From NCBI GenBank assembly GCA_964188305.1, contig OZ076886.1: a DNA stretch of 64,000 bases; one strand, written 5' to 3'. This document shows, in pieces, positions 1-49,400 of this stretch (the first letter of the stretch is position 1; every line of letters starts with the position of its first letter). The stretch is from Podarcis bocagei (taxonomy: Eukaryota). Below the pieces are notes generated by a model that was not told the DNA's origin, made no database searches, and was given only the letters and a program-made list of their open reading frames with translations. The position numbers and the translations under genes are program-made.

Positions 1-135
1 GCCCCACACCCCAAGGTCATGCGTGCAGGCAGCTGAGACTGCCTGCGGGCGGGGAGTGTGCTCCGCACCCAGAGATCATCCCTACAAAATCTATCCCCAT
101 GTCTATTCTGGCTGCACTGTTACTGGATCAAATAA

Positions 136-366
136 TGTCTGGAGGTTCTAACAGGGGAGTGCAGCTACCATATACCCTTGACCGAAGAATGGTACACTCC
201 TTCTACCTGGGATGGTTGTCCTCTTCCTCCAAGCACGCAGCTTCGGGAGAGATGCACATGGAGTGGTGAAGGAGGAAAGGGACACCCTCCTAGCCAGCCA
301 GATCAGCCGAATGAACCCTGGCGATCAATGGGTGACAGATGTCGCAGCCAGATCTCCCTCACATCC
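136..366 (-). pseudogene. RN7SK: 3'-truncated 7SK snRNA retrocopy (about nt 1-230 of 7SK)
   Basis: Reverse complement reads GGATGTGAGGGAGATCTGGCTGCGACATCTGTCACCCATTGATCGCCAGGGTT...GGTCAAGGGTATATGGTAGCTGCACTCCCCTGTTAGAACCTCCAGACA, i.e. vertebrate 7SK from its exact 5' end. It lacks the 3' hairpin and U-tail, shows CpG decay, and is flanked by a 16-bp direct repeat (124-139 / 367-382, 2 mismatches). Confidence 0.93.
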
Positions 367-17730: not shown

Positions 17731-17785
17731 ATGACACTTCTGGGGTCTGAGCATTCTATGCTGATTCGGAGCAAATTCAGATCAG
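17731..17785 (+). CDS. MYOCD: MYOCD exon 1 (MTLLGSEHSMLIRSKFRS; MEF2-binding N-terminus)
   Basis: ATG 17731, donor CAG|gtaggg. Confidence 0.96.
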
Positions 17786-26549: not shown

Positions 26550-29500
26550 TGTTTTGTATATCCTATTGAGATAATATGTATTTTTGTACACACACACACA
26601 CACATATATATATAGCATTCCATTCTTTATATATATATTTCAATGGAAATTTAAAAGGGGAGATTTATATATTAAGTTAAGGGTTTGTTTATATATTAAG
26701 CTCACCGTGTGGAGGCCAGTTTAATCACTCATTGTGGAAATTATGTGGTTAGCCATAATGTGCAGTAGCTCTTTGCTTAAGTTGAGATGGGTTTTGGGTT
26801 TTTTTTGGGGGGGGCGGGTTGTTGCTGATTAAAAGTTCAGTTTTATAGAGATGAAGGGCATTTCCAGATGGGATGTTAATATGCAGAAAAAAATGGTTAT
26901 TATTCCACACTTTCTAGTGCAATTATGCTGTTAGTTTTATAACCACTAAAAGTCTGATAAGGAGAAAGTGATAAGAAAAGTGGTGGGAAATTGCACTGGG
27001 AAGTGTTGCATAACAGTCACTGGGGGTATTGGGTTACCTGCACGTGAATGAATGCCAAGTAAGCAGGTGAAGTCATATAACTGCCACATATGTTTTGTGC
27101 ACACATATGCATGCTAAATAAACAACCACTCTGGAAGCTCCCGATCTAAAATTTGGTAATGACACGGTGAAAACCATCCTGTTGCCGTGCAATCCTATGC
27201 ATGTTTACTCCAAGTTCCACCATAATGAATTATTCTCTAGGAATTATGACTAAGGTTGCAGCTTTAGAATAGTAAGTCTACATGTACAATATGTGGAGCA
27301 ATTTGGATTGGCCTCCTATGAATAAATTGTGACGAATAAATTGACCCTCACCTGCTAAATGCCTCATATATCTACAAAGCAGACAAAAGTTTCTTTAGTT
27401 TCCGTCTTCCCTCATCACATTTTTTTTTTTAATCAAATGTTCAGAATACTGTTAGGTTTGATTTGAAATTTGCAGAGATTGGTTGTTGTTTTTATTTGCA
27501 CCCCTGATAGATATGTCAGTTCTAGAGACACAAGGCAAGTGTTTGTTCTCCAGGGCAAGCTAATGATCTGCCAAACACAAGTGGCTCTCCATTGTGCAAT
27601 GAGGTGCAAAGAAGGAAGGGCATTCACTGCCCCTACAGCTAGCCTGGCTCCTAGGAACTGAAGGGGGGGAGCAGGCTGGACTTCATATATGTCAGAGGTG
27701 TCAAGATTAAGTTGGATTATTTATAGCTGCAGGCAGACCTGTTATGTACATTAGGCCATAGTTTCCTAGACAGTTTTTCATTTTGAGCCACATCCACTCA
27801 TCACTTTCATTAAAATGGGCCAAATCTCAAGAGGATCGGTTTCATCCCTACACAAGATGGTGTGCTGGTTTGCTTTTCATTTCAAACTAAATTTTTAAGA
27901 ATTTGTTTAAGCTAGAATTTCAGTCCAGTGGATCATCTCCTGGCTGCGCCTGGCAGAGCAAGCATATCTATTGCATATAAAACAAATCCTGTCTACCTTT
28001 TCATGTAAATGTGGTCATAGATAATTCATTTTCTTTAACTCCCTTTCCTTCTTTAAGCTAATGGAGCAGCACATATCCGTGTGGGCCATGTTTTCCAGAT
28101 CTGCATCAATTTTTTTTGTAACTCTGAGTTGTTTCCTGTGAACTCTAGAATGGAAACTATTGCAAAAGGCTCCTCTTCTTTCAACCCTAAATAACATGTG
28201 TAGCAGAGAAGCGTTTACTCGAAAATCTTAATAAGCAGCACAGTTAGAATAGCTTGATAAATTTTCATCTTTTTTGTAATGTAGTAACATTAGCAACTGT
28301 GTCTGCTGCGTTATGAAGTTGTTAACGTGTGTGTGTGTGTGTGTGTGTGTAGAGGATGGAGAAGGGGAAATGGTCATTTGACCAAACTCCAGGTTAATTG
28401 GCTTAGTTTTAGTAAGATAATAAGAAAGCTGCATTCCAGTAATAGGTCAGATCTACACTGCTGTTGTAACAAGGATGACTCCTTTTTTTGGCATGTGATA
28501 GAGATCTGAACCTTCCCTCTTTAGCAGCAGAGCGGAAGGTATCTCAGCAAATGAAAAGTTTGGAGTTATTTGTGGCAGAAGTTCGAGGTCCCTTTCTGAA
28601 AGATGCACTCTCTCCCAGTTTTACAGTTGCGGCTGCAGCAGCGAAGAAGCCGAGAGCAGCTCGCCAACCAGGGAATCATGCCACGTGAGTACTTTGCTTT
28701 CTCGCTTTTATCTTTTATGCACTAGCAGGCCCATGCAGCCTCAGCTGAGGGTCCACCACCAAATAAATATAATACAACTTTGCATCATTAGGAACTGTTT
28801 CTGATTCTAAGAAGGGCAAAGCAGGCTTGTACACGTGCACCACTTTAGCACACACAGATCTGGTGCTATGTACCTCTGCAAGAATCAACTCTTATGCAGG
28901 AAGGAAATATTTGTGGCAGAGAGTTACCTTCTTACATAGTGCCCACCCTGAGAAGTCTGTACTGCTGCAAAAATTATTTATTTCTGGTACAATCATAAGC
29001 AAGAGATTGAGTTGAGCAACTGGTCCGGCACTACAGATTGCATGGAATTTTTGCCATCACATACTCAGCTTGTTACTGCAATTACTGTTAAACTCGGGAC
29101 TAGAAGATTACTTACACATGCATCCCAAAATCTAGGATTCTAATGAGCCTCACAGGAAAGGGAGTTTGGGCTTGATTATTCCTGAAGTAGACTATACTGT
29201 ATCATTTTCATAACTCATTTAGGATGTAGGGCACCTTGCAAAACCCTATGAGGCAGGTCATTGTTATTCCAATTTTTTGCAGATGGGGAAACTGAGACTG
29301 AGAGAGATAACACCTTGCCCAAGGCCACCCAGTGAGTCCATGGTCAAACTAGGATCTGAATCCAGGTCTCCCACCCCAAGCACCCACCCTCTCTCTCTCT
29401 CTCTGCTGGATCACACTGATTCTGAGCCACACACAGTGACTGCCTAAGCCTTTGGGTGCCGCATGTTGTAGTTGGCCTCTGCTATTGCTTTCCTCTTAAG

Positions 29501-32500
29501 CCACCTCCTGCAAAACATTCTACATTGTTGGCATGGAATGTCTGTCGCTTCCATACAAATGGTGCATGCAGCAGTTTGGCATTTTCATGAGGCATTTCAG
29601 TGTATGTAGTGCAGGTACAGCATGTTATGTGTGACAGAGTGGATCCACATAGACTTGTTTATTTAATACATTGCCCAAAGTTCTTGGCAGGTTTAATCCT
29701 ATCCCACTATCAGAATTAACTGTCATGTTCTGCAAAAATGAGGTGTCATTGGTGTTTGCCAACTGTCAGGGGATTTTCTGACACCCCATAAAGGCTGCTA
29801 GTTTACCCCCTAAAAGGCATTTTACTCCTCAAAGAGAGGGAGAAAGAAAGTGGCAAGGGGTATGGAGGCAAGAATAGCAGCATTTGTTTAGGCGTCCGAG
29901 GCAAATGGGTTACCACCATGACTCCAGACTTTTCACCTTATTTCATCTCCCCCTCTTCCACAGTCCCAAACATCTTTCTTTCTAGGACACAGTGCTTGAC
30001 CATGGGCTTCAACTAGTATGTGCTTAGGGCTATTTCAGATATGACATTTCCCTAGATGCATTTTGAAGGATATAAAAAATGCCCAAGGACCCATGATAAA
30101 TACATGCATCTCATACCTGTCTGGTGAGTTTGACAAAAAGTGCACATCTTTGCCCATTTCTCGACTGCCTTCCTAATCGGTTTATGCAAAACTTAGAAAG
30201 GGCAAGGTAATTGCCCTTAATATAATCATGCTTCCTATGTTGTAGGAAGAGATCCCATTGATTACTTTTGTTCCTGGGCACTCACATATTCATCAGTGGT
30301 AGGTAGTTAGAGAATTACACCCAACTACATCCCGTTTGCAGTCACTGCCCAGCAAATCCCTTGGGAATACATGATGTAACTTGATTGATACTAAGTGAGT
30401 GTGGACTTGGATAGGAGACCACTGAGAACCTCACAAAAAATGATGAGCAGCATATATAAATATAGCAAATAAATCACATTTTCTGCACATGTCCATAGTA
30501 TTAGGTCTTCCAGCCCTCCTAATTTAAGGGTGGGTTTTTGTTTTGCCTTCTCCTTTGATGCCTTTTCTCACATTGACAAGGCTCATAAACCTATATAGAA
30601 GCCTCATTGCCCAGTTCACAATTAATACAAACCACAGTTAATGGTTTGTTGTGAATGTGGAGATCACACCTGCTTTGCTGCTCCCCTATTACAAGCATGA
30701 GCACAATCCCTGGCTTAACATTACATCTGGGGATGCTGCAGAATTCCAAGAAAAATGGAAACAGGAGTGGAAATTGCCAATGTTCACTTATTCATCCCAT
30801 GTCCAAAATGGAAATCCACCTGTTGTTGCTGCTGCTTTCAGTCCACAGAAGATACATGAATTATTACTTTTCCCCACCCCTACTTGCATTGTGTTTTCTT
30901 TGCGTTGAAATGAATAGGGGGGAATAACATCACGGCAACATAATTTGCATGTAAATTACATAAGGTACATAATTTGACACAGTGGATGGAAATACAGATA
31001 GAGTGGTTTTTTGTGGAAGGCAAAGCGCAGTGGAACATAAACAGTGCTGCATGCAACAAATAGAGGTCAGAACAGAAAATGATGTTGTCTTGCATCCCTA
31101 ATAATATCTGAGCCAAGGATTGTGATTTGTTTCACTCAAACTAAGTTTGATTGAACAAACTTTGTTTGGAGTGAAACAAACTGCTATCTCCAATCCAGAT
31201 GTAACACTAGGGATTATGTTTTGTTCTTCCTGCTAGGGAATGATCAAAACAGGAAGCCCTTGTGTGTTTATGTTTAAACCATTACCTGTGTTTATGGCAA
31301 AAGCATTTACTGTGGTGTGTAAATGCAGTCAGTTAGTTAGTGGTGTTAGTAGGGGTTCAGGATTTAGTCAGTTAATTGGTTAGGTTAATAAGTTTAATTT
31401 GATCAGCTGACAAGCTGCCCCCAAATTGGTATATCTACATTATCAGTTTTTAACATAAGTACTTAAAGAAGTTTCAGATGTCAAGCAGCGTCATGTCCTT
31501 CTGTGTGTGATAGAACAGGGGACAGCTCTTCAAAGATGAGGCCTACTGTGCCACTTGTGGGCATAATTTTAAAACAAAGTACGTTTTTCTTTAGAACAAT
31601 TTTTATCTCATATGCAAATGTATGCAAGTTTAATCAATAAATTAATCAATGTACCCAAACTCAAATGAACAAAGATTCATATGATTGGGTGATAGACACA
31701 GGTTTTACTCATTATTGATTTGCCACTATTTATCATCGGCAAGCAAGTCACACAGCTGACAAGCCTCTCTTAACGCCATGGTGGCACTCTCACTGGGACC
31801 CTTCCTCTCAAACCAGAGCATTCAAACTTCATGTCACTCTTTTAAAATCAAAATGGCTATAAACTATAAGATTTCAAATCTATTATTTGCCTTTTAAAAT
31901 TATAGCAATTTCCTGATTTCTTTTCTCTGTGAAAACAAAACACTTCCCACCCCTATGGCCAAAAGCAGTAGCCTTTCCTGGCAGGCACAACGAGAAAGTT
32001 AATTATGTTTAATTGCAATACTTATTATTCAATGCACATGCTCTTAAAAATTGTGATAACTGAAGGCTCAGGACAGGTCTGTGTTGTGGGACAGTATCCA
32101 ACTCACGTGGTCCATCAGCACAAGTATTTCCGCTTGCACATTTTTCCTCCTTTTTCCTCCTTTGTGTCCAACTCACTCCCCAAATCTACTCTGCTGGAGA
32201 GTTTGGAGAGCCCCTAAAACAGATTTAGGAAGCACACAAGAGGGGAGAGGAGGTAAGTCCAGCTGTGCAAGTGGAAATCCTTGTTCTGTCAGAAAATATT
32301 ACTCAATGCTACTTTGGATACAATCCTATGTGTGTAATTCTCCTTTCATCATTGTACTCTCACTCCAGACTTTAACTTCTAAACTTCCACTACTGCCACG
32401 ACTTCCCTCATGGAAGAACCAACACATTCAACCCCATATTGACATAGATTTTTTTCTCAGACAACCATATGCTGTTGGTTTGTCTGCAGAATTCACATCA

Positions 32501-34871
32501 ATCCTCTTGGCAAAGGTCCCTTTGTTTTGCGTCCATCCTTTGTCATGGATCCTACATAACTTTAGCGTTCTGTAATGTGCATTAATTGAGCTGTGCAGAA
32601 GAGCAACACTGGTTTCCTGCCTTGCAGATTACTTTTATCGGATGCTCTCTCAAAGCTCTTCCCACCATCCCACTAGCTGTGAACCAGGCCTCTGCACTGG
32701 TGCACCAGCTTCTCAGATTGCTCTTGCAATATCTGAAAGTAGGATGGTTTTCACCCTATGAAGTTTACCAGAATCTGTTTTACAACCGTCTTTTACCACT
32801 GAGGTGTCTCCTCTAACTTTGCCTTTGGTGCTCTGTGACACTTTTTTATTTACTCACTCACTTTAAAAGTTTTTTCTTCTTTTTGTTTGGCCTTTTAGTT
32901 GCGCAGGGTTTGAGTCTTCAATAAAACAAAATATCTATCGTGCTTTAGGATCTAGTTAACTACAGGAGGCAAATAATAAATTAGCTCATCCAATTGCGTC
33001 AATGCAAAATGACTCATAACTCTGACAATAAATCCGTTTGGTGACGGGAGGTAACAACTGGCATGTGGGGACTAGAGAAGCCATTTGTTAAAAGCAGTTT
33101 GGGTTGTTTTGTTTATTTTATTGAAAAAAAGAGAGTTTTTAAATAATAAAAAAATCACACAATATATAATTCTCTTGGCTTTTGACTTTCCTATCCCACA
33201 GTTTGACTGTGCTCCCAAGTCACATTTTGTGCAAAGAAAACAAACAAACAATAATTTGACACTTATTAAAATGGAGATGAGAATTGTTTCCGCAATCTTT
33301 ATTTTTGGATTCTGGACAACTTTCACTGTATAAATAACTAGGCTACAATTCAGCCATGAGATAAAGAGCTTTTGCGCAGCTTTGGGAAGAGTGATGCTTT
33401 CCTCTCATGCCCTTAACCCATGACACAGAAGAAATAGCAAGACCCAGAAATGGTTCAGAGAGTGAGACCCAAATGAGCTGGGAACTGTGTGCCAAGTCAT
33501 CTTCACGAAGCCTGTGAACACACTGGGACAGCCTCCCCCTTGGTGATAGAGTATAACAAAGTACAAATTTCCTAGTCAGTGAGAACTAGCCAACACTGAT
33601 GGTAGGGAGAGGGGGAAAAGGCTCCATGATGAGACTATGCAGATAGGAAAAGGCTGGACTGCCAGTTGGGGAGTGGAGTTCAAGGAGCAGGTTTTGCCCC
33701 TACCTTTTCCTTGCTGCCATTTATTCCTGTAGGACAAATACAGAGTTGTGATTCAATCCTAACAGCATGTTTATCACTGGAGGGCGTTAAGATATGGTGG
33801 AGGAGGCGACCCTCTTTTTTTTATCTCGATGGAACTGCAATCTGAAGAAACAAATATGTCCTCCAAACAAATATCCGGAATGTGGTTCAGAACACAGAGC
33901 AGGCACTGGTGGAGAGCATCAGAATTTACTGGAGCATTCTGCTTACTCTCTTATATCGAGAAGGAGATTTTGCCAATGGATGAAGGAAGGAGAGCTCATT
34001 GTTGAAAAGAATGTGTGACAGAATGGAGCAATTTATCCTTCTTGCTGATTTTGTATGTGCTGCTGACACCCATGTGATACAATGAGACTCAGACTCTCAA
34101 TTTTATTAGCAGGTCTCCTCTGGACATTAATCTCACTGGTGGTCCTCTCTATAACTAGATCCTTCCTCCCCGACTGATCACTTTAGCTGGAAGTCAACTC
34201 CACTGAAACCAAGCTCCCCAAATGCGTCTAGGATTAACGTGCAAGGCTCTGTCTCTTGAGCTTCTCACCCAATGTGTTTGGGTACTGGACAGGCTGCACT
34301 TTACCGCCAGGCCACTCACCTCCCTCTAAGATGCCTTAAAAAAAGATGGCTGTCTCCAAACAGCTCTCAGCTCTCTCCCTGCTTTAGTTACCATCTGTGT
34401 CTTTGCTCCTCTCTGCCTCGTTTCCACTGCCACAGCCTGGCCTGGGAATGTCTGTGGTTATTCCTCATCCATTTTCATTTGATGCAATAAAGGGGCTGGC
34501 TGATTTGTGTGGCTAATTTTGTTGAACTTTGTTACAATGGCACAATGCTGAAAATGTACTTGTTGCTCGCTGTGCTCATTGTGCTTTTGTCTGTTTCTGA
34601 TTGCAGCGCTGAAAAACCCCTCTCCCTTCCATGAGCAAAAGAAGAGTTTGGAGAGAGCCAAGGTAACCCTGGGTAGGCATCAGAGGGGGTGGCTGGAGAT
34701 GGCATCATGCAGGTTAACTAGCTGCTGAGAAAGTTGTGGCCATGTGCAGGAATGTGAGTGGAATGTTGGAAAATCACTGGATTCATTTCTGCAGATACTA
34801 CTATACCTTTAGCACACCTTTACAGGGCTCTAAACTTAATTGGCACATGTCCCATGAGAAAGTGGCTTTGT

Positions 34872-34925
<54 letters not shown>

Positions 34926-37900
34926 CAGTAGGAAACCTTGTGCCTGATGTCTGCAGTACACCATATTGCCCTTCTCTTCTTGTGACACTGCAGAGTGCTT
35001 TTGGGCTGTTCTTAACCTGTACTCTTGTCTCTTGCTGGCACCAGTTATCAAGCAGAGTTTAGGCGCTGTTAATTAAAGCTAATGAGAAAGATAAGATTAA
35101 GAGGCAGTTCCCCCCCACCTACCCCACTAGTGGAAGAGCTGGTGATCTGGTCTTATTTAGAGAAACTACAAGATATTCTCAAGCTTTCCCTGCTGCAAGT
35201 CTCCAGCCAAGGCTCTTACTAGAGGTGCAGCGGGGGGGGGGGGGGGCAGAAATTTGATTCCGTTTACATTTAAAGGCGAACCTACCTAATTTGCAATTTC
35301 AGAAATAATACGCAAACTTAAACAAGGCCATCCTTCAAAATTTGTGTTTCTCTGAATTTTGCAGTTTGGCAAAGGGGGAAATTGGGGAACTGTCTGCTTA
35401 GAGAAGCTTTTTCCAAGACTGATAGCAGTTCTCTTATATAAAGAATACAATCCATATATAGAGAGGCCTATAGCTCATTCATAAAGCTGGTATTTTGCAC
35501 GGATGACGACCCGGGTCCAATGACACCAGCAGCAAGATTGGTAAAGAGATATGGAGATATGCTGCTAGTTACAATAGACAATGCTAGGCTAGATGGACAA
35601 TAGTATATGGTAACTTTGTAATGTCCTAGAAACTATGACTTGATTTGCTCAGAATTTGTATTAGTAGTAGTAGTTGCCGTCTGTTAACTTGTCCCATTTA
35701 ATGACAACTTGTGGTGCACCTTATCCTTTATTTCCTCTGTTTATGATAGGAGTTAATATGTAGAGGAAATTTAGGTCAGGAAGCCAAACAAGTGAATCCT
35801 TTTATAGTCTCTACAATTCTGTGTACATATATATTAACTTACTTTCAAAACTCTTGATGAAATTTATGTATAGGCATGTATCAAAAACCTGCACACATGT
35901 AGAAGATGCCTATGTTACATTGTTGTATATGAGTGTCCTGCAAAAATTCAAGACCAACGTAAGGAAGGATGTATAGCCCCCTGTGAAAAATAAATGTGCT
36001 TAGAACACTTCAAGAAGTCTGAAGTATCTTAGAAGTACCCTATATTTCAATGTTCAGGCATAGGTTAATATCTCACAGTCTCCCTTCAAAGGCTTCTACT
36101 GGCCGATTGCCTGGAAGAAAAAAGGATTATATGAGTCAAAAGCCCTAAACTACATTCGTTTAGGGAGAAGTAGAACCAAAAATATATTCTAAGCCTTTAT
36201 TCAGCAGGGGAGGGGCCTGGGGGCTGGCAGGGGGAACCAATATCAGAACACTTCACAGCTAGTTTGGTTGAGAGGGACTGATGGGAAACCTACTTGAAAA
36301 TCTTTGTTCACACATAACATGAAACTACACCAATTTAATTGCGGTGGATTTTAAATACCTATTAGCTAAAACACAACAGAGCTGCTGTTAGATGAGTTCT
36401 AGTGAAGTAAATAAATTTACTTTGATACAGCTGGGTACTTAGGGCTGAATTTTACACTTGTTTAAGATCTGTGCCGTGAGCTAAACTGAAATTGTGCTGA
36501 ATATAGTGCATATTAAAAGTTGGTGTAGTATTATGATTCCTTTGTGCCAATTATAAGTTACTTGCATTCTGGGAAACCTGCCAAAAGTTCGGGTTTGCAC
36601 AAATGGAGCTCTTAAAAGATCCAAGTCCTAGCCTACAGACATTCAGTATCCAGACAAAAAGTTGTGGGATAATTATAGAATTGGAAGGGACCCTGAGGGT
36701 CATCTAGTCCAGGGGTCTGCAACCCGCGGCTCTGGAGCCGCATGTGGCTCTTTTACACCTTTGCCGCGGCTCCGGGGCGGATACTAGCGAGAGGAGGAGG
36801 CGCATTGTGCGCCCCGACACTCCCCACTGTGGCGGGCACTGTACTGGCTGTGATGTCACATGGGGGCGGTGCGTGCGTTAGTCACGCACCGTCCCGACGT
36901 CACCTTCCCGCCCGCCCGCTACACTGTAAGGGGCATGTACGCTGGTCACTGCATTGAAAGGGGGCATGTATGCTGGTCACTGCATTGAAAGGGGGCATGT
37001 ACGCTGGTCACTGTTTTGAAGGGGAGTGAAGAACACACACACACAAAAAGGTAACTTGTTAATTTAATGTTTATTTCTATGAGGAGGAGTAATTCTGAGG
37101 GGTCAAACAAAGAAATAATAAAAAGTGACAAAAAAGTTATTTTTATAATGACGAGTTTTGTGGCTCCCAGGTTTTTTTTCTTCGGAAACGGGTCCAAGTG
37201 GCTCTTTTTGTCTTAAAGGTTGCAGACCCCTGATCTAGTCCAACCCCTGCAATCTCAACTAAAGCATGCAGATGGCTTCTGCTTAGTCGGTTCCACTGTC
37301 AAACAGCTCTTGCCATCAGAAAATTATTCTCGATGTTGAGCTGAAATCTCTTTTCCTGTAACTTGAATCTTTTGGTGTGGGTCCTACCAGAGAAGAACAA
37401 ATGTTAACTAAAATGAACGTCAGTTAGACCAAATCTGACTGAATCCTTTTAAAGAAGCATTGCCTAATGCACTTTAAATCAAGCTAGTGAGGTAATGATC
37501 TCTGTTCTTATGTTCTGTAGACTGAAGATTATTTAAAGCACAAGACCCGAAACAGACCTGAGCGCTCAGAACTGGTTGATATGCACATTTTACAGGGTAA
37601 GATTGAATGAATACGTTTAAGATCTTGCTATTAGCATACAAAGTCCTTAATAACCAGATTATCTTTGGGACCACCTAATCTTGTATATCGCTACCCAGTC
37701 ACTTCAATCCCTGGGTGAGACACTCTTAAAGGTGCTGCTTACTCCTGACGTTCATCTTATGTCTGCAAAAACCCAGGGCTTTCAGTATTACATCACATGC
37801 CCTTTGGAATGAGCTCCTGGTAAGGCAGGCACCTATAGTGTTGCTATTTCCGGTACCTACTTAAAACACATTTGTTTACTCAAGGGTGATCCAGTTTAGT

Positions 37901-40375
37901 AGTGTATATTTCTGATTTACTAATTTGTTGGTGTAATTTTGTTGTTAGCAGTGTATTTTATTGATGATTTTATGGGGATCACGACCTTGAGGTTTCTTTT
38001 TACGTTTGGAAGTATAGAAATACACCACCGAATTGCAAATGAGCTGTTCTATGTTAATAGATAGTCTAGACTTCCGCAAGGGTTTTGGACAACTCCCATC
38101 ATCCCTGACCATTGACGATGTGGTCTGGGGCTGATGGGAATTGTAGTCCAAATCCTCTAGAGAGCACCAGGTGGTGGGAGACTGCCTTAGATGTTTTGGA
38201 CGTCTTGTAGTTGTGGCAAGCCAACAGCAGAAGACACTTCTGCCATGTTCTGAGTAAGCCTCAGTGTCTTTTGATCCCTCTTCAGGAAAGGTGTAAAAGC
38301 ACCTTTTATTGCCCTAATCTAGGCCTTCTTGGTAGCAATCTCCTGCTTATGGAATGCTTATGAATTATTTTAGGTTTTAAAACTTTTCTAAAATGTTTGT
38401 AATCTTTGTTAGCTTGCCACCTTGGGTTCCTTCAGGGTGGGGACAAGAATAAACATCGAACTGATTTATGATGATGTTTGCATGATGTTATTCTATAAAC
38501 AAATCTGGGGTGGGTTTTATTTGAGCCTGGCTGGGGCAATTGCTGCTCCAGCATGTATGGCACACAATATACAACTGGGGGAAAATGCACATCTCATGAA
38601 GCAAGTTATTCCCTCTTTTAGATACTGCTTCTTGCAATTCTCATTTAGCTCTTGAAACCAAGTTTTTACTGGGCTTGCAGAAATGACTTTCCTGCATAGG
38701 ATTCCATGCCCAGCATTGCATTTGAAGGATTGTTTGCTTGTGTGCTACCCACTCCCCAGCAAACTGTGGCTCAGCCATGCTGGTATGCAGACGCACATAA
38801 AGGGTGTGGTGCATTGGGTGAGAACCTTGGAATTAATTTGTTTGGCTATAGGGAACTATGTACAGGTAATACTTTCTGTGTATCTTGAGCATTGTTAAAA
38901 TTGACTGCATATCAGATCAGCAGTGAGAAAAGCTTATCTACAAGCACACCTGTCATCATTGCACTCTGTGGTTAAAGGTAAAGGTAAAGGACCCCTGACA
39001 GTTAAGTCCAGTTGCAGGCGACTGTGGGGTTGTGGCGCTCATCTCGCTTTACAGGCCAAGGGAGCCGGCGTTCGTCTGCAGACAGTTTTTTCTGGGTCAT
39101 GTGGCCAGCATGACTAAGCCGCTTCTGGGGCAACAGAACACCGAAACCAGAGCAGCGCACAGAAACACTGTTTACTTTCCCACTGAAGCGGTACCTATTT
39201 ATCTACTTGCACTGGCGTGCTTTCGAACCGCTAGGTTGGCAGAGCTGGGACAGAGCAACAGGAGCTCGCCCCATTGCGGGGATTCAAACTGCCGACCTTC
39301 TGATTGGCAAGCCACAGTTGTTTTATGGTTCAAGAGAAATGCTTTGTGTTACAGCTACACTCAGGTTCTAATTACTGGGAAAGAACTGACATAGAATTTA
39401 TCCTGTGTTTCTTAGAAGTGATAAAAGGAAAGGAGCTGTGGCACAGGCTGGTTATTTTGTGGAATAATTTATATTTTTACCATTTGGCTTTACAGATTCA
39501 GCCACAGAAGGGTCTGTCCAGGCTACTCAGATGAAACTGAAAAGAGCCCGTCTTGCAGACAATCTAAATGAGAAAATTGCTCTTAGGCCAGGTCCTCTGG
39601 AGCTGGTGGAGAAGAATATCATTCCTGTTGACTCAGCTGTGAAAGAAGCCATCAAAGGTAATACCAGGAAAGGCACCTCTGGTGCTATAGCAACATCCAT
39701 GCACAGTAGGCTATACAAAAGACTCACTGTGGAGAGGGTCCCTTGCAATGTGATGTAGGGTTCTTGATGTTTTCTCCATGGGAATGCCTTTGGAATAATT
39801 CCCATAAGAGAGTACAGATCCATGTTGAAGAGCTAGCAGGATTCTAGCACCCTAGAATGGTTCCTTCATTCCTGCCCTCTTCAAATCCCTCTTCACTAGC
39901 AGAGTAGGAAGAAACTTGATCAAAGCCAGACATGTCCCTGGAAAGATTACAGCGTGTAGCAGGAATCTTCCTTCCTTCCACTGCCTACTCTCGTGTCTTC
40001 CAGCCTTGCAGGGGCTTTTGTGATAGAGCCTGTCTTTCCCAGCACTTTACTTATCAGCAAAAGCCAAGGGTCAAGCGCTTTTGCCTGCTAGTTTGTTGGA
40101 TATTGCACAGGAACACTTTCCAGAACCCACTGAGTATGCTGAGTGGCAGAGAAGCATCATCTGGCATAAGCCACATGGATTCGCGGAGAAGCAAAATGGG
40201 TCGCATCTTTGCAGCATTTCTCAAAGGAGGTTGTAGGATGAAAAAACCATGCAAGCTATTGATTTGGTGAATTGTTTGGGGGCACATTCTTGATGAGTTT
40301 CTTGGAGTATTCTCACCATGGTGCACAAGCAGCATTTGACACCCCCCCCCCAATATTTTTTTTGTGGGCTTCCAA

Positions 40376-40410
<35 letters not shown>

Positions 40411-43400
40411 CAATTGTCTTTTTAAAAAATTGACTGCTCCTATTTCCCCACTCCCACAAATTCCCAGCTGTGACTCCAGAATGTCAAAAGGGTTTTTTGT
40501 AACCCCAACCTCCAAGACTCTTAAAATGTGCCCTATATTTTTTTAAAATAGAATGACCTTGCCCAATTTTACACTTTGGCCACATCCACTTTGAAATGTG
40601 CATTTAAAAACAAATGTGCATTTTTAAACGAATAATCTGAACTAATACAGAGACGATGCAATTTGAAATGGGATAATAATTGCATTCTGCAGAGTTGTGA
40701 AATTTTGGGATAAAAACAAGAGCCTTCTAATGATGCTATCCTTGAAGGTTCTGGATTTATTAAAGATCTGTTATCTTGCAGGGGGGAGGGTCTGAAGACT
40801 GATGGGTGCAAGCTGTGGCACATATAATATAGTGCCTCAAACAAAATCATGAACATCTTCAAAAACAGTTGAAAAGAAAGAAGATCCTCATTTTTTAAAA
40901 AACAAAACCCAGTAAAATAGTAACAATCCTGAAAATGTGTGTTCCACGGAGAATCAGAATCTCATGGGAAATCAGATAGTTCCAGTAACCAATGTTTGAG
41001 AATTATTTATTTATTTAAAGCATTTGTAATCCCATTCTGCAGCTGAAAATGATTCCAGAGCAGCTTATAGAGCAATTAAGAAACATGGGAACCCTCAGGC
41101 TTCTGATCTAAAATGCAGAACTCAAAAGGAGGAAAGGATGGAGTGAGGAGGGGGAAAGCAAGCTGAAGCAGTTCTTAAACTTACAAAATGTTCACAAGGG
41201 CCAGCTGGTGTGGAAACAGTTCAGGGAGAGGAGTCAAGAAGCTAGTCCCTCTCAATAGTCATGCTTCCCATCTCTCCGTCTGATGCACTCGGGTGGGATG
41301 ACTGCTCCCAGGATGATGGAGAAAGGCCTGGTGGAGCTGGACCTTCAACAGAGCCAGTGGAACCAATTGCTGAATTCAGATTTTATTAGCACACCATTTA
41401 CATGGTATCGAACCACTGCTTCATTAGTGGTTTTCTATAATAGTTCTCAGTTGAATGTTTGTCAACCATACTGAATTTGCTGCTTTGGTACTTGCCTTTG
41501 AGCACAAATAAATCACAGCTTTACCTACCTGACAGGAACAAGAAAGTGTACATCTGTGAATACTGTAGTGTGTTAAGATCACTTGTTTGCTTTGCTACAT
41601 GTACACTTGTTAAAAACTTACTGCCATTCAGAATCATCTATCACGGAGTCTTTTTCTTCCTTCCTGCCACAGGTAACCAAGCAAACTTCTCTAAATCCTC
41701 AGATGCTTTTGCTTTTGAAGAAGATAGTAGCAATGATGGGCTGTCCCCAGAGCAGATCAGAAGCGAGGATTCCCAGGGATCCACAGAATCAGCAGCCGGA
41801 ATCAAAATTCCAGAAGCAACGTTACCCACAATGTCAGGGACAACTCAGGTAAAACGGTATTTCTTACTTTTGGACAGATGAGACGTCCTGATACTTTGGA
41901 TTAAATTTGCAGAACCAAGCCACACCCACCTCCCACAAGCTCAATCCAGGTCAGAAAACATGCGCTTGGATTCAGCACAGTGAGTGTGCTTCCAAATCAG
42001 TCCCTCTGCTATAAACTTTTTACGTTTGTCTTCACCCCTCGTCAGCATCCAGTACTGGACAATGCGTACAAGAGCTTCTATTAGGAAAAAATGTCTGATG
42101 CCAGAGGAAGCATATTCCTCTCCTCGGGGCTGGAATAGGAACTCGTTGTGGGTAAAAAGATGCAATGCATGCCAAGATCTCTCTGAGGGCACTGTAGCCT
42201 ATGGAGGAAGCCAGCTGTAAGGTCAGCCTCTGGTGGTTACATAAAACATGGGGGTGTCCTGCAAAGGATCCTGAGCCACTGTTAACCTGAACACGACATA
42301 TTCTTGGCTTGGAGTGCCCTCCTCCATTCCGGCAGTTTTGTTACACAGTGTACTTGGCATGGGGCACCTCCATTTTCCAAGCACTTATGGCACAGAGCCC
42401 AACGATTCGTCCATTTGGTTTCCCTAATAACACTAGCCTGATAAATGCGATTGGTCTCAGCTGTGGAGAAATGCCATGGCAGGGAGTCCCGAGTCACCAG
42501 CAAAATATGCTGATTGATTATGATGGAGACTGAGAAATTGGGGGCCTCCAAGGTAGATTTTGTTGATTTCTTTTTTAAAAAAACAACATTTATTTATAGA
42601 ATGTCCGTTACAGAAGAACTTTGCATTTATCAGTTGGTGGATTGGATTTAGCTAGCTAGCCGTTTTAAGATCAAGTGATTTTAGGAGTGTAGTTCACTGC
42701 TCTCACAGCTTGTCATCCATTTCTTTTACCTACTTCAGTGTCAAGCCCATTTTATATGGAACCTTATCCCTATGGAAGACTGCCTTCTGTCGGCAATCCA
42801 TGCTATTGCTTTAACATCTACCATAGATCCTCTTGATTGCATAGAGCAGCCTTGCCCAGCCTAATACACTAAAGCTTGCTTTGAACTACAATCCCCATTG
42901 GATGTTGTGAGTTGTAGTCCAGTAACATCAGGTGGTCACTAGGTTGTTGAAGGCTGGTGCACATAGTTTCCAGGAGCATCTGATGCTGGCAAGGAAACTT
43001 CCATGTTACGCTGCTCTAAATACAGATCATGGAGAGATGCCAGTTGAAAAAAGTGATAACATGTAGTCCAGTCCTAGTGAAGGCTCCAAACAAGGTCAAG
43101 ATAACTGGTCCTGAGCAAGACTAGCATGGACCATTTCTGTAATAGTCTGTAAGCTGCCTGCATGTGGACAGGCTTCTTGAAAATGTGCATATTGATGTTT
43201 ATTAATTTCCATGTATTTATTTTGATTCTAGGATCATTCCGTTGGCTCTGAAAATGATACGGCTGATATGACATCTCTGAGGAATGGCCAGCCAGAAAGT
43301 CCTAAACAACAGAATGGGCAACAAACACCTCCTGGCACTGTTACCACATCTGCAAAGGTATGAGCCTAACCTCCCACTACGTAGGAAGAAAAATTGTTAA

Positions 43401-46400
43401 CATGGCTTATTGGCTAGACAACAGCTAGCACTCATCTGCAGTAAGGGGGGGGGCTGGTTTTAGGTGTTTGGGGAGGTGAGTTACAGTGTTGGCTTTGCTT
43501 GGAGATGGGAGTCGCTAGGAACTACCCAGACAGTACCTCCTTGTGTCACAAAACTGGGTCCATTAGAATTCTGGGGTGAAAGTACCTGCAAAAGGAGCAA
43601 GCTGAGACTTTGATGATCTGTTGAAGCCAAGCTGTTTCCAACAATAGCGCCAACAGGACCTTGTGTTAGATGGCTCATTCATCTGTCTCAGGAATTGTGG
43701 AATTCTATGAAGCTGTCATGGGCACTACAAAATACCCATTTCAGAGAGGGAAAATGGCAATACAGTGGTGCCCCGCAAGACGAATGCCTCGCAAGACGAA
43801 AGGGTTTTCCGTTTTTGCGTTGCTTCGCTAGACGAATTTCCCTATGGGCTTGCTTCGCAAGACGAAAACGTCTTGCGCTTTTTTTTTAAAGCCGCTTGAA
43901 GAGGCGCAGTTGCGACGGACCGTGCTTCGCAAGACGAAAAACATCGCAAAGACTCGCAAAACAAATTCTTTTCGTCTTGCGAGGCACCACTGTATTCAGA
44001 AATATTGCCCCAGACAACAGAAATAATATCCATGCATACTCCAAACCAAACACTGGTATATTTTAAACTACTAATTTCCATTTATATTTTGATTTTTTTT
44101 TTAAAAAAAAAGTTGCTTAACTTTTATGGATAATTTTAATGTATATTTAATATTCCATGTAAACCACTAAGTAACAGACAAACCACTTATGCACGTATCT
44201 CTTCCCAAAACATCTAGGGAAACTCTGCCCTTCAAAACAGACAAAATACTCCCTTGTCCCTCTAGGGCAACAAGAGGGCCCTCCGTCCCTTTTCTTATGA
44301 TATTTAGAGAGAAGTTGGAAGGCAAAGCACTGCCCTATAGCTTTCCTTCTTTACTCCTTTCCTATGGAGGTGGACCCAGAGGCATTCTGGGGGAAAGGGG
44401 AGTAGCTGGATGCTGCCCAAGTTAAAAATGAAAGAAATATTTAAAAGCCGTAAAGCAACGATTGGCAACATGGTGTCCTGCCCATGTTACAGACTACAAT
44501 CACCCTTGAGCACTGGTCATGCTAGCTATGGATAACGGGAGTTGTAATTCCAAACACACCTAATGTTTAAAAATGGTCACCGGGGAGGTGACCTGAGGAC
44601 TGCCCCATGATGTTGGGGGCAGCAGGCCTATCTTAAGGCTGCGTTACATGTTGAGATTTTATATTTGGGTCAGAGTATCCAAGTACAAAATACACCAGTA
44701 CTGTGACGATTGTAAAACATGCATTAGTATATTATTAGATACATATCATTTAAAAATTCTTGGAAGTGTCATCTGGGTAAGGACCAGATTGCTGCTTCAG
44801 ACTGTTTTAAAAGGAATGTGTGGCTAATAAATATATAAACATGCCCTTTACAAATGATGTGGTGCCTGTATATTTTGTTCCTTGTACTAAACTACAGAAG
44901 GTCAGATGGGAAGAAGGGATGTACAAACACGTCTCAATTGCAATATTCATTTGCACTTTCTTCTGATGTTTTCCATTCCTATGCAATTGGTTTATTTTGC
45001 AAAAGTTTGTGTGCTGTTTCATTGCCTGCTGATGTGGAAATACTTGTAATTTCAAACATATTTTTTTATGTAGCACACATTAGACACATATATCTCAGCC
45101 ATCAACAGATAACTTACAAATGAGTTACATTCCTTGTGTTTTCTGGGGGCGGGTGGGGGGGACGGACCATGTTAGTATTTTGCAGCAAAAAAACTAGTCT
45201 TCTACTTCTCGCTACCTTGATTTCACAGTTCAATATAAACTTGTCATAGAATCAGGGTTGGAAGGGACCCTGAGGGTCATCTAGTCCAACCCCCTGCAGT
45301 GCCGGAATATGCAGTGACCTTGGCATTATCAGCACCATGCTCTAACCAGCTACGCTACATGATCATCCTATCTTGCTTTCTTCACTCTGGCGTCAGGGAG
45401 GAACAGTTTAGTTGTAAGTCAAGGTAACCCCAGGAAGTGTGGTTTTCCATGTGAAAAGAATAAGGAGCAATGCATTCCGCTGGCTTTAAAATACACAAGA
45501 GGATACAGATTAAGTCTGAAATTGTAACCGTACTTGGAAGTCAGTGAGATTTACTTCTGAGTAGACATTGTTGGGATTGCAACATGTTAGTGCATATAGG
45601 TGGCCTTAGGGTGCGAACAACACTTTAGAAACAAGGACAGTAAAGAGGCACCTGTATACATGATGATGTAAATAATATATATAGCAAAGCAATTTACATA
45701 ACATGTTCATGTGGTGTGGGTTTTTTTTAAAGTTCGTTGTAGATAACTAAGGTAAATAGTTTCCACAGCGAGTGTCTCTGCCAGTGGGGATAAAATGGGC
45801 AGATTAAAGGAAATTTGCTTGATATTCTGTTTTCGGTGGATTCCTTCGACAACTCTAGTGAGAAGGGACATCTATTATGACCTCCCACAGTCTTGATACT
45901 ATCTCCACTGACTTGCAGGCTTAGAGGCCCTGGGCACGGGAGCTCGCTAAACTTTCTAACTAACTTCAGTTACTCCATGTTGCAGATAATCTTATTGAAA
46001 TTTTTATTTGTGCCCCATTTAGTCAAAACCATCTAGCGATAGCAAGAATCGCCACAAAAAGCCCAAGGAGATGAAGCCAAAAGTGAAGAAGCTTAAGTAC
46101 CACCAGTACATTCCCCCAGACCAGAAGGCGGAAAAGTCCCCTCCGCCCATGGACTCGGCCTATGCAAGGCTCCTGCAGCAGCAGCAGCTCTTCCTGCAGC
46201 TCCAGATCCTCAGCCAGCAGCAGCAGCACCGGCACCAGCAGCACTTCAACTATCCGGGGCCCCATTCCATGCAGCTGAAGTGAGTTGGTAACGGAAAGGT
46301 TTCCTAGAGTAACCTTTCCACCTTACCCAGGTTTGATTTCTTGCCGCAATCAATTTGGGGCACATTCCAGCCCATTAGTCACTTTTAAGCTCTGTTAATT

Positions 46401-49400
46401 TAAATAGGAAATTAAAGTGTGTGCTTAAGAGAGAAAGCCTCTCTCTTTTAAGTGTGGTCAACTCTTCCAAACTTCAGCAGGATTGTACCCTTCAGGACAA
46501 CAGTGGTGATGCAGTAAATTTTATTGCAGAGCAACTCAGGTTGGTCAACCCATCGCACAAGTGCTATAAAACAGGCAAAGTGTAACTCCTCAGCAATAGC
46601 TCACTTTTATTTTCAGAAAGGTGACCAAATTATACCAGCTGCTATTCAGATTTTTCAAGCTAAAGTGTCATCCCAGCTACTTTTTGGGATCCCAATATGG
46701 ACAGAAACATATAATAGTGATTTAGATAAGATACACTCCAGTTTCTTGAGATGTATCCTGGGGCTCCTAAGTTCAATCAAGTATGAGACGATGTATGCAG
46801 AACTAAGTGTACACATGATGGAATATTGGATGAAGGCTAGCACTATAAAATACTGGCTGCGTTGCCATTTTTGCTGCCAACCTTTGAGTCTGCTCTCTGA
46901 CTTGCTTAAGAACTCTTATACATCCAGATCATTCCAGCTCTTACATAGCAAAATTAGCTCTATTGGTATTGACTTGGAATCCTGGTATAATTCAAGTGAG
47001 CAATATATTTATTGCAATATTCAAACTAGATTAAGGGACATTCATTGAATCAGTTGTAAATAAAATTTGCTCCCCCAAGCTCTATGGTTTAAATACACCA
47101 GATAACAGGGTCACTTAAATCTCAAAATTAATAATTCCAGCCCAACGCAGGGCCTTTATGTGAGCCCAGCTGAACATTTCCCCCTCAGCTCTTGTCAAAG
47201 GCAGATATTTAAACATCCCCAGAAATGATAGACATTGCAGATGTTATTTGAACGTGCCAGACACTGTAGAACATATCCTTTTCTACTGTCCATTGTACAA
47301 CCAGCTATGTAAACACGTGCTATCCCCTTTTTTGGGAAGTCTAACATCATAGCACAATGAAAATATCAGATTCTATCTGTCTGACACTTACTCAGAAGTA
47401 ACTGCAAAGGTGGCTGAGATTTTCTCAATAGTATCTCTTAGAGCGGTGACTGGCACTATTTAGCAGGAAGAAATCCCAATGATAATTCTTGTAATTATAT
47501 CTTTTACATGGCTTTTATTTGTATATATGGATGTTTTATGATGGCCAGTACTTGTAATGCCTAATAAAGGTTTGGTGAAGTAAGTAAGAATACTGATATT
47601 TAAAAAGAAGAAGAAAACAAAAGGGGGGAAATGTTCTGCACTTTTATTTTTTACAGGCAACCCAATGAGCAAATGGCCAAAACCTCAAACTCTTCCCCAT
47701 CGGCAGTTGCCAACAGCCCTCTTTCCCCTGGGAAGGGAAGCTTTTCAGGGCAATCCTGCATTTCGTCTCTCAAGCCAGGTCCTCTCCCATCCAACCTGGA
47801 TGATTTAAAAGTGAGTACTGAATGCAAAAGTTGATGAAAAGTGTAAAACCTTCTGTGTGGTATATGAAACTGCATGTGTAGGCAGTGTGTTCCTCCAGCA
47901 AACACATGGTTAACTCCTGCACTTCGGTCAATATCCCAAATTAATCAAAATTCAAATATCACATAAATTGAAGCAGTCAAACACCACCATAAGATCAACA
48001 GACCAACTAGGGTCAGTGGACTGTAGAGAAGAGACCAAATTATTATTGGCCAAAGCTGACTTAGAACTAATAAAATCGGACATCGTAGCTTGTTTAAAAA
48101 CAGATGGCAGAGCCAGTTCTATTTCAATAATATTCGTTGTTTAAGAATGCAAACCATTATTTTACTAACACACTAAATTAAAACAAAATTAACACAAAGG
48201 CAACCCTGGAACAAGAAAAAACCTCAAGCATTAAAAATATCATACGTTAAGAAATCAATTGAAACCAAGTTCCCTAAGCGAACACAGGCACGTGCCAGAG
48301 GCACAAGCTCAGGCAGCTGTTGCTGAAAATATAGGCCATCCACAGGAAGCAAAGTAATGGGAAGTTCAACAAGCTCTGATGTTCTGCCTAGTCTTCACCT
48401 GGAGGACTTGCCTGTGCCCAAAGGGCTGCAGCTCCTAAGCAGGGACAGGAGAGTATCCTCAGGAGTAATGACGGTGGACTGGAAAGCTTGCCTTCTCTCT
48501 CCCCCAAGTTTCTCAAGAAACACTGCTCTGTCTATATCTAAAATGTAAGAAGGGCAGCCCAGGTTAAAACCAGCCACAAATTCATTAGGTGTAGGCAGTG
48601 CTATTTTTCTAGAAAAAGAGGTGCCAGAACTCACAATGAATGTCTCCCTTGTTCTCTTAGAGTGGCAACGGAGCTCACCTGAGAGGTGCTGAACTGAATT
48701 CCGGCTGAAAAATAAGCCCTGGGTGCAGACGTTCAGTCCCACTCCAGGCTTATTACAACTTGCATAATTTTAATTTGGACAGCATAGCACCTAAGGCAAT
48801 AGAAATAATTAGAGATGTCCAAGTAATGTTGTGCTAAGCAGCACAGGGACAAACTGACGTATCCAGTCCAATTAATAGCAGCCATTTTGGAGCCCAAACT
48901 TTACCCAGCCCAACTCTTTGTCCGTGCAAATAATCTCTGGTTTAGATTTGGGTCAGGGTCCACTGTAAGTTGAACTGCCACAAAGTTGAACTGAAAAGCA
49001 GCCTTGCCACTGACTAAACGGCTTTCATTCCAGGTGTCGGAGCTGAGGCAGCAGCTCCGAATAAGGGGCCTCCCTGTATCAGGTACAAAAACGGCCTTGA
49101 TGGAACGCCTGCGGCCCTTCCAGGAGTGCAACGGGGGTTCTGTGCCCAGCTTCAATGAGATAACCACCGTCACCTTCCCAGTGACACCAACCAACTCTCT
49201 CTCCAGCTACCAGTCGCAGTCTTCGGCCAGCCTGCTGTCCAATGGCTTTTACCACTTTGGCAGCACCAGCTCTACTCCCCCCATCTCCCCAGCTTCCTCA
49301 GACCTATCGGTGAATGGCTCCTTGCCAGACAGTTTCAACGAAGGACCAATGTCTTCCCCCCATTTTGTCCTGCACCCTTCCCCTGTGCAAGGCGGGTGTG

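Follow-up and report, generated by a model that had tools for sequence, protein, structure and literature searches.

The window analysed here, a 64-kb stretch of genomic DNA from a Podarcis-like lacertid lizard, contains a complete orthologue of MYOCD, the gene for myocardin, and the second RPEL motif (RPEL2) of the encoded protein is of canonical type. Judged by alignment, this type is the ancestral vertebrate state of myocardin, since it occurs in every sauropsid sampled, in most amphibians and in one of two cyprinids, and the degenerate RPEL2 known from mouse and human is a derived condition. Myocardin is the master coactivator of SRF in cardiac and smooth muscle. The mouse protein binds G-actin poorly, and the function of its RPEL motifs has been described as largely unknown (PMC3941051). 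The reading proposed here, in which we place moderate confidence, is that lizard MYOCD retains the ancestral canonical RPEL2 and that its cardiac isoform may be subject to modulation by actin.

In the long cardiac-type isoform, which starts in coding exon 1, RPEL1, spacer 1, RPEL2, spacer 2 and RPEL3 follow one another. The segment 28619-39657, where the original prediction had recognized an intact MRTF-like RPEL domain, extends from the first base of coding exon 2 to the last base of coding exon 5, and all peptides quoted from it are encoded on the plus strand: RRSREQLANQGIMP at 28642-28683, LKNPSPFHEQKKSLERAK at 34609-34662, TEDYLKHK...DMHILQ at 37521-37595 and KLKRARLADNLNEKIALRPGPLELVEKNII at 39534-39623. 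Sequences that had been cited for comparison also proved accurate, the human one, HLDSDKAKNSLKRKARNRCNSADLVNMHIL, being residues 54-83 of human MYOCD (P0323), and that of MRTF-A (MAL/MKL1) agreeing with snake MRTF-A (P0038); likewise, the RP core of RPEL2 and the LERAK-TEDYL spacer are readily read from exons 3-4. Scored with the Pfam RPEL profile (PF02755, cut-off 23 bits), RPEL1 of the window reaches 20.3 bits, which is below the cut-off, RPEL2 26.2 and RPEL3 31.1, and the RPEL3 exon matches chains of the solved MAL RPEL domain (2yje, E = 5e-23). Lizard RPEL2 reads RNRPERSEL, with the core R71-P72-E-R-S-E76-L77 corresponding to the canonical R-P-x-x-x-E-L (R125, P126, E130 and L131 of MAL). 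Leu64, Lys67, Arg71, Pro72, Arg74, Glu76, Leu77, Val78 and Ile82 are retained, and Leu83 is also present; by alignment, most of the residues by which MRTF-A contacts G-actin are thus kept (Leu64, Lys67, Arg71, Pro72, Arg74, Leu77 and Ile82), including hydrophobic side chains for the subdomain-3 ledge (L131 and I136 in MAL; L77, V78, I82 and L83 in the lizard). The core of RPEL1, RRSREQL, fits the non-canonical RRxxxEL and keeps Arg30. The likeness to MRTF-A, known from sequence, extends to the entire RPEL1-spacer 1-RPEL2-spacer 2-RPEL3 layout, the R-P-E-R-S-E-L core, the spacer SLERA[KR]TEDYL and the places of the basic elements: B2 (KLKRAR) is identical to that of MRTF-A, and a B3-like element, KHKTRNR (37536-37556), lies within lizard RPEL2, versus KRKIRSR in MRTF-A. 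The ERK site S98 of MRTF-A was tried as a discriminator and discarded, the Ser-Pro of LKSP being present in both sauropsids and placentals; lacertids read LKNPSP at this site.

For a broader comparison, about 300 MYOCD proteins were gathered and counts were taken on distinct N-termini. Pro72 is found in all 13 N-termini of birds, turtles and crocodilians, in 7/7 of squamates and in three of the four amphibian ones. R-P-x-x-x-E-L together with L64, K67, L77 and I82 is present in every one of the seven squamate N-termini. The position of MAL Ile122 is occupied by Ile in 12/13 bird, turtle and crocodilian N-termini, and the commonest RPEL2 form of this group has few differences from RPEL2 of MRTF-A. 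Thr at this position (Thr68) is confined among squamates to lacertids (the window, Podarcis and Zootoca), and it is found independently in the softshell turtle. Since the R-P core is likewise present in MRTF-A and MRTF-B, the canonical RPEL2 is taken as the ancestral myocardin state. Thus, the MRTF-like motif is not confined to lizards, being shared with sampled birds, turtles, crocodilians, most amphibians and one of two cyprinids, and the alignment of RPEL domains across vertebrates that the original prediction had proposed as a check upheld a canonical RPEL2 in most sampled non-mammals and spoke against a loss of the RP core in one mammalian event. Bird, turtle and crocodilian myocardins share with the lizard both this motif and an RPEL1 core of RRTREQL or RRSREQL; they differ from it in Ile at the Ile122 position, in Pfam scores of 29-33 bits and in stronger constraint (0.56x, see below). 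Birds and turtles are on this comparison more MRTF-like in RPEL2 than the lizard, and chicken or turtle is a better test species for actin sensing. The scores obtained with the 25-residue RPEL2 exon of each source (cut-off 23 bits) are as follows:

Snake MRTF-A: 33.1 bits
Owl: 33.3 bits
Turtle: 29.0 bits
Horseshoe bat: 29.0 bits
Window: 26.2 bits
Seal: 26.0 bits
Caecilian: 25.7 bits
Squirrel: 19.2 bits
Armadillo: 19.1 bits
Elephant: 16.7 bits
Human: no hit

Two deviations outside mammals deserve separate mention. Of the cyprinids, Pimephales promelas (P0014) retains KHKIRSRPEKSEL, and Danio aesculapii (P0019/P0270) reads RSRSEKSEL with Ser for Pro, which suggests that the Danio lineage lost the RPEL2 proline independently, a point of relevance to work with zebrafish as a model. 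Gecko myocardins (P0208, P0430 and P0432) read R-P-A-P-[SL]-E-L, in which Pro stands where MAL has Arg128, and Pro at the equivalent position lowers the actin affinity of MAL RPEL3 (PMC2583105).

The placental set comprises 60 distinct N-termini, and the changes common to all or nearly all of them appear in the alignment outside the RP core. In 60/60, Arg30 of RPEL1 is replaced by Gln and Tyr63 is gone, the spacer LERAK became LDSDK in all or nearly all, and position 68 is occupied by Val (29), Ala (24), Gly (6) or Thr (1), with no Ile in any of the 60; Arg30, Tyr63 and LERAK, each altered in the placentals, are all kept by the lizard. The RPEL2 proline itself survives in 18 of the 60, namely in armadillo, carnivores, pangolin, rhinolophid, hipposiderid, molossid and vespertilionid bats, shrew and mouse lemur (P0218, P0248, P0306, P0308, P0313, P0314, P0319 and P0362 are among the placental myocardins with an RP core). 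It is replaced by Cys in sloth, by Phe in an emballonurid bat, by Ser in afrotheres, horse, cetartiodactyls, phyllostomid bats, mole, tree shrew, Glires and most primates, and by Cys in anthropoids. Mapped on the accepted placental tree, this distribution implies about eight or more separate losses of the RP core. The Gly plus Ser of rodents and the Ala plus Cys of anthropoids, on which the textbook view is based, are in this comparison lineage-specific end states, and an "actin-blind" RPEL2 as in mouse and human may not hold for all mammals. The suggestion that constitutive activity may be a mammalian innovation is, in terms of RP-core loss, an oversimplification: the degenerate mammalian RPEL2 is derived, and the core was not lost in one event. 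Queries from caecilian, elephant and seal, the last scored on residues 19-99 alone, returned no monotreme or marsupial MYOCD among the best 120 matches each, and likewise no murid sequences; the mammalian sample is thus a placental one.

Constraint on the motif was described at the protein level by column entropy and by a relative rate, the latter being the mean pairwise distance over residues 41-84 (spacer 1 and RPEL2) divided by that over residues 132-939 of the same proteins; neither figure is corrected for phylogeny.

RPEL2 column entropy, placentals: 0.85 bits, versus 0.05 in placental RPEL3
RPEL2 column entropy, birds, turtles and crocodilians: 0.15 bits
RPEL2 column entropy, squamates: 0.31 bits
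RPEL2 column entropy, amphibians (n = 4): 0.56 bits
Relative rate of residues 41-84, placentals: 1.76x
Relative rate of residues 41-84, squamates: 1.38x
Relative rate of residues 41-84, amphibians: 0.86x
Relative rate of residues 41-84, birds, turtles and crocodilians: 0.56x

By these measures, constraint is clearly lost in placentals and clearly present in birds, turtles and crocodilians.

What the retained residues may do can be considered against the structure of MAL RPEL2 with actin (Mouilleron et al., 2008, PMC2583105). In that structure, the hydrophobic cleft receives Leu118 and Ile122 together with the aliphatic portion of Lys121, the R-loop is made up of Arg125 and Pro126, actin Tyr169 has Arg128 and Leu131 around it, and Ile136 belongs to the C-cap (PMC2583105). 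Substitution P126A made binding 16-fold weaker, and nearly all RPEL conservation was attributed by these authors to actin binding (PMC2583105). At the positions of Ile122 and Pro126, mouse myocardin carries Gly and Ser, which is the authors' explanation for its weak affinity (PMC2583105), and its RPEL2 makes no contribution to actin binding (PMC2583105; PMC3941051). The same two positions are Ala and Cys in human, with no Pfam hit, and Thr and Pro in the lizard, with 26.2 bits. By analogy, RPEL2 of the lizard is reasonably likely to have a measurably higher affinity for G-actin than its counterpart in mouse myocardin; it probably binds more weakly than that of MRTF-A or bird myocardin, because Thr replaces the Ile that contacts the cleft. 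In MRTF-A, B3 is physically masked by RPEL2-bound actin, and B3 together with B2 is needed for importin alpha/beta binding (PMC2964165); RPEL1-spacer 1-RPEL2 carries a stable trimeric actin core (PMC4963197). G-actin seated on lizard RPEL2 would in the same manner cover the B3-like KHKTRNR and compete with importin alpha/beta. Actin would then most likely modulate the import of the cardiac isoform or how active it is, rather than impose a full MRTF-like switch from cytoplasm to nucleus. Actin control of non-mammalian myocardin is in this sense plausible, and full Rho/actin-dependent shuttling of the MRTF type in the lizard seems doubtful; caution regarding both binding and shuttling is dictated by Thr68, weak squamate constraint, REQL, the short N-terminus and the binding of ARP5 and MEF2 by the same region in mouse.

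A number of observations weigh against modulation by actin. Thr68 stands at the position of MAL Ile122 beside an intact Leu64 (MAL L118), leaving alpha1 with one hydrophobic residue of the expected two, and a double alanine mutant of this pair virtually abolished binding by MAL (PMC2583105); of the two positions blamed in mouse, the aligned lizard sequence has therefore the Pro intact and that of Ile122 changed, which the original prediction had overlooked. Unlike MRTF-A, the lizard protein has Asp79 where MAL has Arg133, His instead of Arg in B3 and, in RPEL1, the myocardin-type REQL rather than REEL. It is also devoid of the long N-terminal extension: merely 18 residues precede RPEL1, compared to 47 in snake MRTF-A (P0038), and for this reason the NES1 (nuclear export signal, NES) and ERK-docking region of MRTF-A appears to have no obvious counterpart in the lizard. 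Contact positions vary among squamates (I/T at 68, R/P/Q/H at 74, V/A/S/T at 78) and residues 41-84 evolve there faster than the rest of the protein, so that the segment is not strongly constrained and actin binding in lizards may already be under weak selection. RPEL conservation could serve the binding of ARP5, MEF2 or importin instead (PMC3941051; PMC9900090), and in the literature searched we found no reports on RPEL function, actin binding or localization of any non-mammalian myocardin, which is not proof of absence.

These points lend substance to the view that lizard myocardin is constitutively nuclear and independent of actin, like that of mouse, and that RPEL2 was kept as an import element, as a ligand of ARP5, for co-operation with the MEF2-binding N-terminus or by phylogenetic inertia, which we regard as quite possible, if short of an even chance. 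It draws on the squamate rate and the variable contacts, on Thr68, on a myocardin-type N-terminus of 18 residues ahead of RPEL1, on the observation that mouse RPEL motifs bind ARP5 and are otherwise of a function called unknown (PMC3941051; PMC9900090) and on the dependence of MRTF-A cytoplasmic retention on several NES elements in addition to actin (PMC4963197). It accords poorly with the invariance of R-P-x-x-x-E-L, L64, K67, L77 and I82 in squamates and with the attribution of virtually all RPEL conservation to actin (PMC2583105), while the low rate of birds, turtles and crocodilians and their MRTF-grade Pfam score argue for a sequence-specific ligand of RPEL type. The original prediction went further in the opposite direction and regarded reptile myocardin as possibly a Rho/actin-regulated shuttler like MRTF-A, constitutive activity having arisen on the mammalian stem by loss of the RPEL2 core. 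The retained RP core, SLERAK-TEDYL spacer and B2 are in line with this, as are the changes shared by all placentals (Arg30 to Gln and loss of Tyr63 in 60/60, absence of Ile68 and LERAK to LDSDK) and a long placental stem branch (0.28). Persistence of RP in 18/60 N-termini across Xenarthra, Carnivora, Pholidota, Chiroptera, Eulipotyphla and one lemur, however, makes the core loss recurrent and late, seal and horseshoe bat still score above the Pfam cut-off, lacertids have Thr at the Ile122 position and monotremes and marsupials are outside the sample, so that this scenario is unlikely as it stands. Between these two, we favor modulation of the cardiac isoform through an ancestral RPEL2. Its widest extension, that myocardin was originally a G-actin sensor whose cardiac isoform is still gated or tuned by actin in birds, turtles, crocodilians, amphibians and, more weakly, lizards, with mammalian actin-blindness arising by lineage-by-lineage decay that is complete in rodents and anthropoids and perhaps incomplete in carnivores and some bats, is put forward very tentatively and is rather improbable as a whole.

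The attribution of the locus to MYOCD is unambiguous. Coding exons were placed by aligning Podarcis lilfordi myocardin (P0214) to the window with tblastn, after which splice sites were fixed; the alignment is collinear over its full length, and the 13 exons joined over 17731-54206 on the plus strand give an open frame of 939 amino acids with all junctions of the AG/GT type. Coordinates of these exons and of related elements, all on the plus strand, are listed below (exons without other indication rest on the P0214 alignment and exon join).

17731..17785, coding exon 1, Met1-Ser18, cardiac/MEF2-binding N-terminus MTLLGSEHS..., donor GT (tblastn with P0214, exon join)
28619..28684, coding exon 2, RPEL1 with RRSREQL core (Pfam RPEL 20.3 bits on 28621-28683)
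29283..29331, alternative exon 2a, 49 nt, AG/GT (matches N-termini of annotated isoforms of lacertids, Pogona and geckos)
34607..34662, coding exon 3, spacer 1 (LKNPSPFHEQKKSLERAK) (alignment; joined to exon 4 in X1 and X5 contigs)
37521..37596, coding exon 4, RPEL2, residues 60-84 (Pfam RPEL 26.2 bits; spliced contigs, 0 mismatches)
37581..37583, ATG of Met80, predicted start of the short (smooth-muscle-type, 860-aa) isoform (annotated MHILQ/MHILK starts in relatives)
39496..39657, coding exon 5, spacer 2, B2 KLKRAR (39534-39551) and RPEL3 (about 39561-39629) (Pfam 31.1 bits; contigs)
41673..41848, coding exon 6
43232..43357, coding exon 7
46023..46279, coding exon 8, basic and Q-rich regions
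47657..47810, coding exon 9
49034..49984, coding exon 10, SAP domain and coiled coil/leucine zipper (Pfam SAP 35.4 bits)
51043..51156, coding exon 11, PPxY motif
52020..52077, coding exon 12
53638..54206, last coding exon, transactivation domain, ends ...DLHLQQW, stop at 54204-54206

The whole protein is 99.5% identical to myocardin of Podarcis muralis, 99.4% to that of P. lilfordi, 99.0% to P. raffonei and 98.4% to Zootoca; five to nine residues differ from each of the Podarcis proteins, indicating that the window comes from a different species or individual. Identity falls to 64% for macaque MYOCD and to 35% for snake MRTF-A. In the maximum-likelihood tree (IQ-TREE), the window is sister to P. 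lilfordi within squamates (100/100) and a MYOCD clade supported at 96/94, MRTF-A and MRTF-B form their own 100/100 clade and MAMSTR-like proteins fall outside. The N-terminal exon encodes the MEF2-binding motif MTLLGSEHS..., identical to Podarcis myocardin in 18/18 positions, the Pfam SAP domain scores 35.4 bits, and the C-terminus ...DLHLQQW is of the MYOCD type DLHL[QE]QW, tails of sampled MRTF-A/B being mostly of the ...LQLHWD type. Cardiac MYOCD of mouse and human is the orthologous gene and has the same exon plan, MEF2-binding N-terminus, three RPEL positions with RPEL3 and B2 nearly identical to those of the lizard, basic, Q-rich, SAP and leucine zipper regions, a transactivation domain ending in DLHLQQW and a short exon-2a/Met80 isoform, which is predicted in the lizard. 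Predicted myocardins of P. muralis, P. raffonei, P. lilfordi and Zootoca vivipara in NCBI/UniProt (98.4-99.5% identity) have the same isoform repertoire, the first 140 residues of P. muralis isoform X4 being identical to the window protein, and none of these Podarcis and Zootoca records holds a functional statement on the RPEL domain. As a genome feature, the locus is an ordinary orthologue of a gene already annotated in congeners. In mammals, the gene lies in the order MAP2K4 - MYOCD - ARHGAP44. MYOCD occupies 17.7-54.2 kb of the window, and its flanks gave only 7SK-like and SCARNA16-like matches. The tree and the identities (99.4% versus 35%) show the gene to be MYOCD; of the arguments by which the original prediction had distinguished it from MRTF, the termini hold, and linkage to MAP2K4 is not visible in the window and is also unnecessary for the identification. 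That the locus is an MRTF-A/B paralogue miscalled myocardin, or its RPEL2 exon a chance open frame that is not used, has nothing in its favor beyond the MRTF-like look of RPEL2 and carries a negligible probability: placement in the tree, the contrast of 35% to snake MRTF-A with 64% to macaque and 99% to Podarcis MYOCD, MYOCD-type termini at both ends and the joining of exons 3-4-5 in expressed contigs rule both variants out.

The latter contigs come from two runs (X1 and X5) of a very close relative, which shares about 0.9 of sampled words with the window. They contain the joints 34662/37521 and 37596/39496 and have 0 mismatches in exons 4 and 5, from which it follows that the runs contain RNA, that exons 3, 4 and 5 are joined as predicted and that the RPEL2 exon enters mRNA. 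Raw reads of two bulk RNA-seq runs (X23 and X24) gave zero depth on MYOCD exons and covered only intronic repeats; hence, neither expression level nor isoform ratio is readable from those runs.

Alternative starts would alter the composition of the RPEL array. The short isoform that had been proposed to begin at ATG 37581 (Met80, the Met of DMHILQ) agrees with annotated isoforms of P. raffonei (860 aa), Hemicordylus (866 aa) and Pogona (859 aa), and by its sequence it would be without RPEL1 and RPEL2. The mammalian smooth-muscle isoform is produced by inclusion of exon 2a, with 79 residues carrying RPEL1 and RPEL2 gone (PMC3941051). As computed for the lizard, inclusion of exon 2a shifts the frame of ATG1 into a TGA in exon 3, and transcripts of this kind translated from Met80 would be without the actin-binding module. 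Unlike in the mammalian description, lizard exon 2a brings an ATG of its own whose frame continues into exon 3, and annotated isoforms of 914-915 aa starting in exon 2a are found in lacertids, Pogona and geckos; these would retain spacer 1 and RPEL2 and lose RPEL1. Exon 2a and about 150 bp around it (window 29150-29450), with the acceptor at the classic ...TTTT.CAG/ATG.GGAAACTGAG site, appear to resemble the MIR (core-SINE) consensus closely, and the region is single-copy within the window. Exon 2a may be an ancient exonized MIR controlling the switch between cardiac and smooth-muscle isoforms.

Other features of the window are two non-coding RNA matches and several repeats in MYOCD introns. 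The RNA matches, both full-length, are as follows:

17-366, minus strand, 7SK RNA match (RF00100, 196 bits, covering model positions 1-331 of 331), some 17 kb before MYOCD exon 1, either a gene or a retroposed copy
55481-55660, minus strand, SCARNA16 match (RF00424, 146.6 bits), antisense to MYOCD and some 1.3 kb beyond its stop codon

Interspersed repeats resembling short interspersed nuclear elements (SINEs) occupy 21146-21371, 52336-52561, 39032-39394 and 36612-37315; one direct pair of intronic repeats is 87% identical, and similar open frames occur at three places. Very high read or contig depth was observed at 36612-37315 and 38900-39427 in all four runs, with zero depth in the flanking intron. 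These intronic repeats look like expressed repeat families.

Annotation of the gene in congeners and weak actin binding of mouse myocardin are already known. What may be new, in that it was not met in the literature searched, is the generality of a canonical RPEL2 among non-mammals, its constraint in birds, turtles and crocodilians and its piecemeal loss in placentals. An RPEL2 that is ancestral, that these three groups have kept under constraint for hundreds of millions of years and that has repeatedly decayed in placentals offers a route to the role of this motif. If myocardin does not sense actin outside mammals, the conserved motif points to another RPEL ligand, for instance ARP5. If it does, the heart and smooth-muscle programmes of most vertebrates would be coupled to the cytoskeleton via myocardin, and the mouse would be unrepresentative of them.

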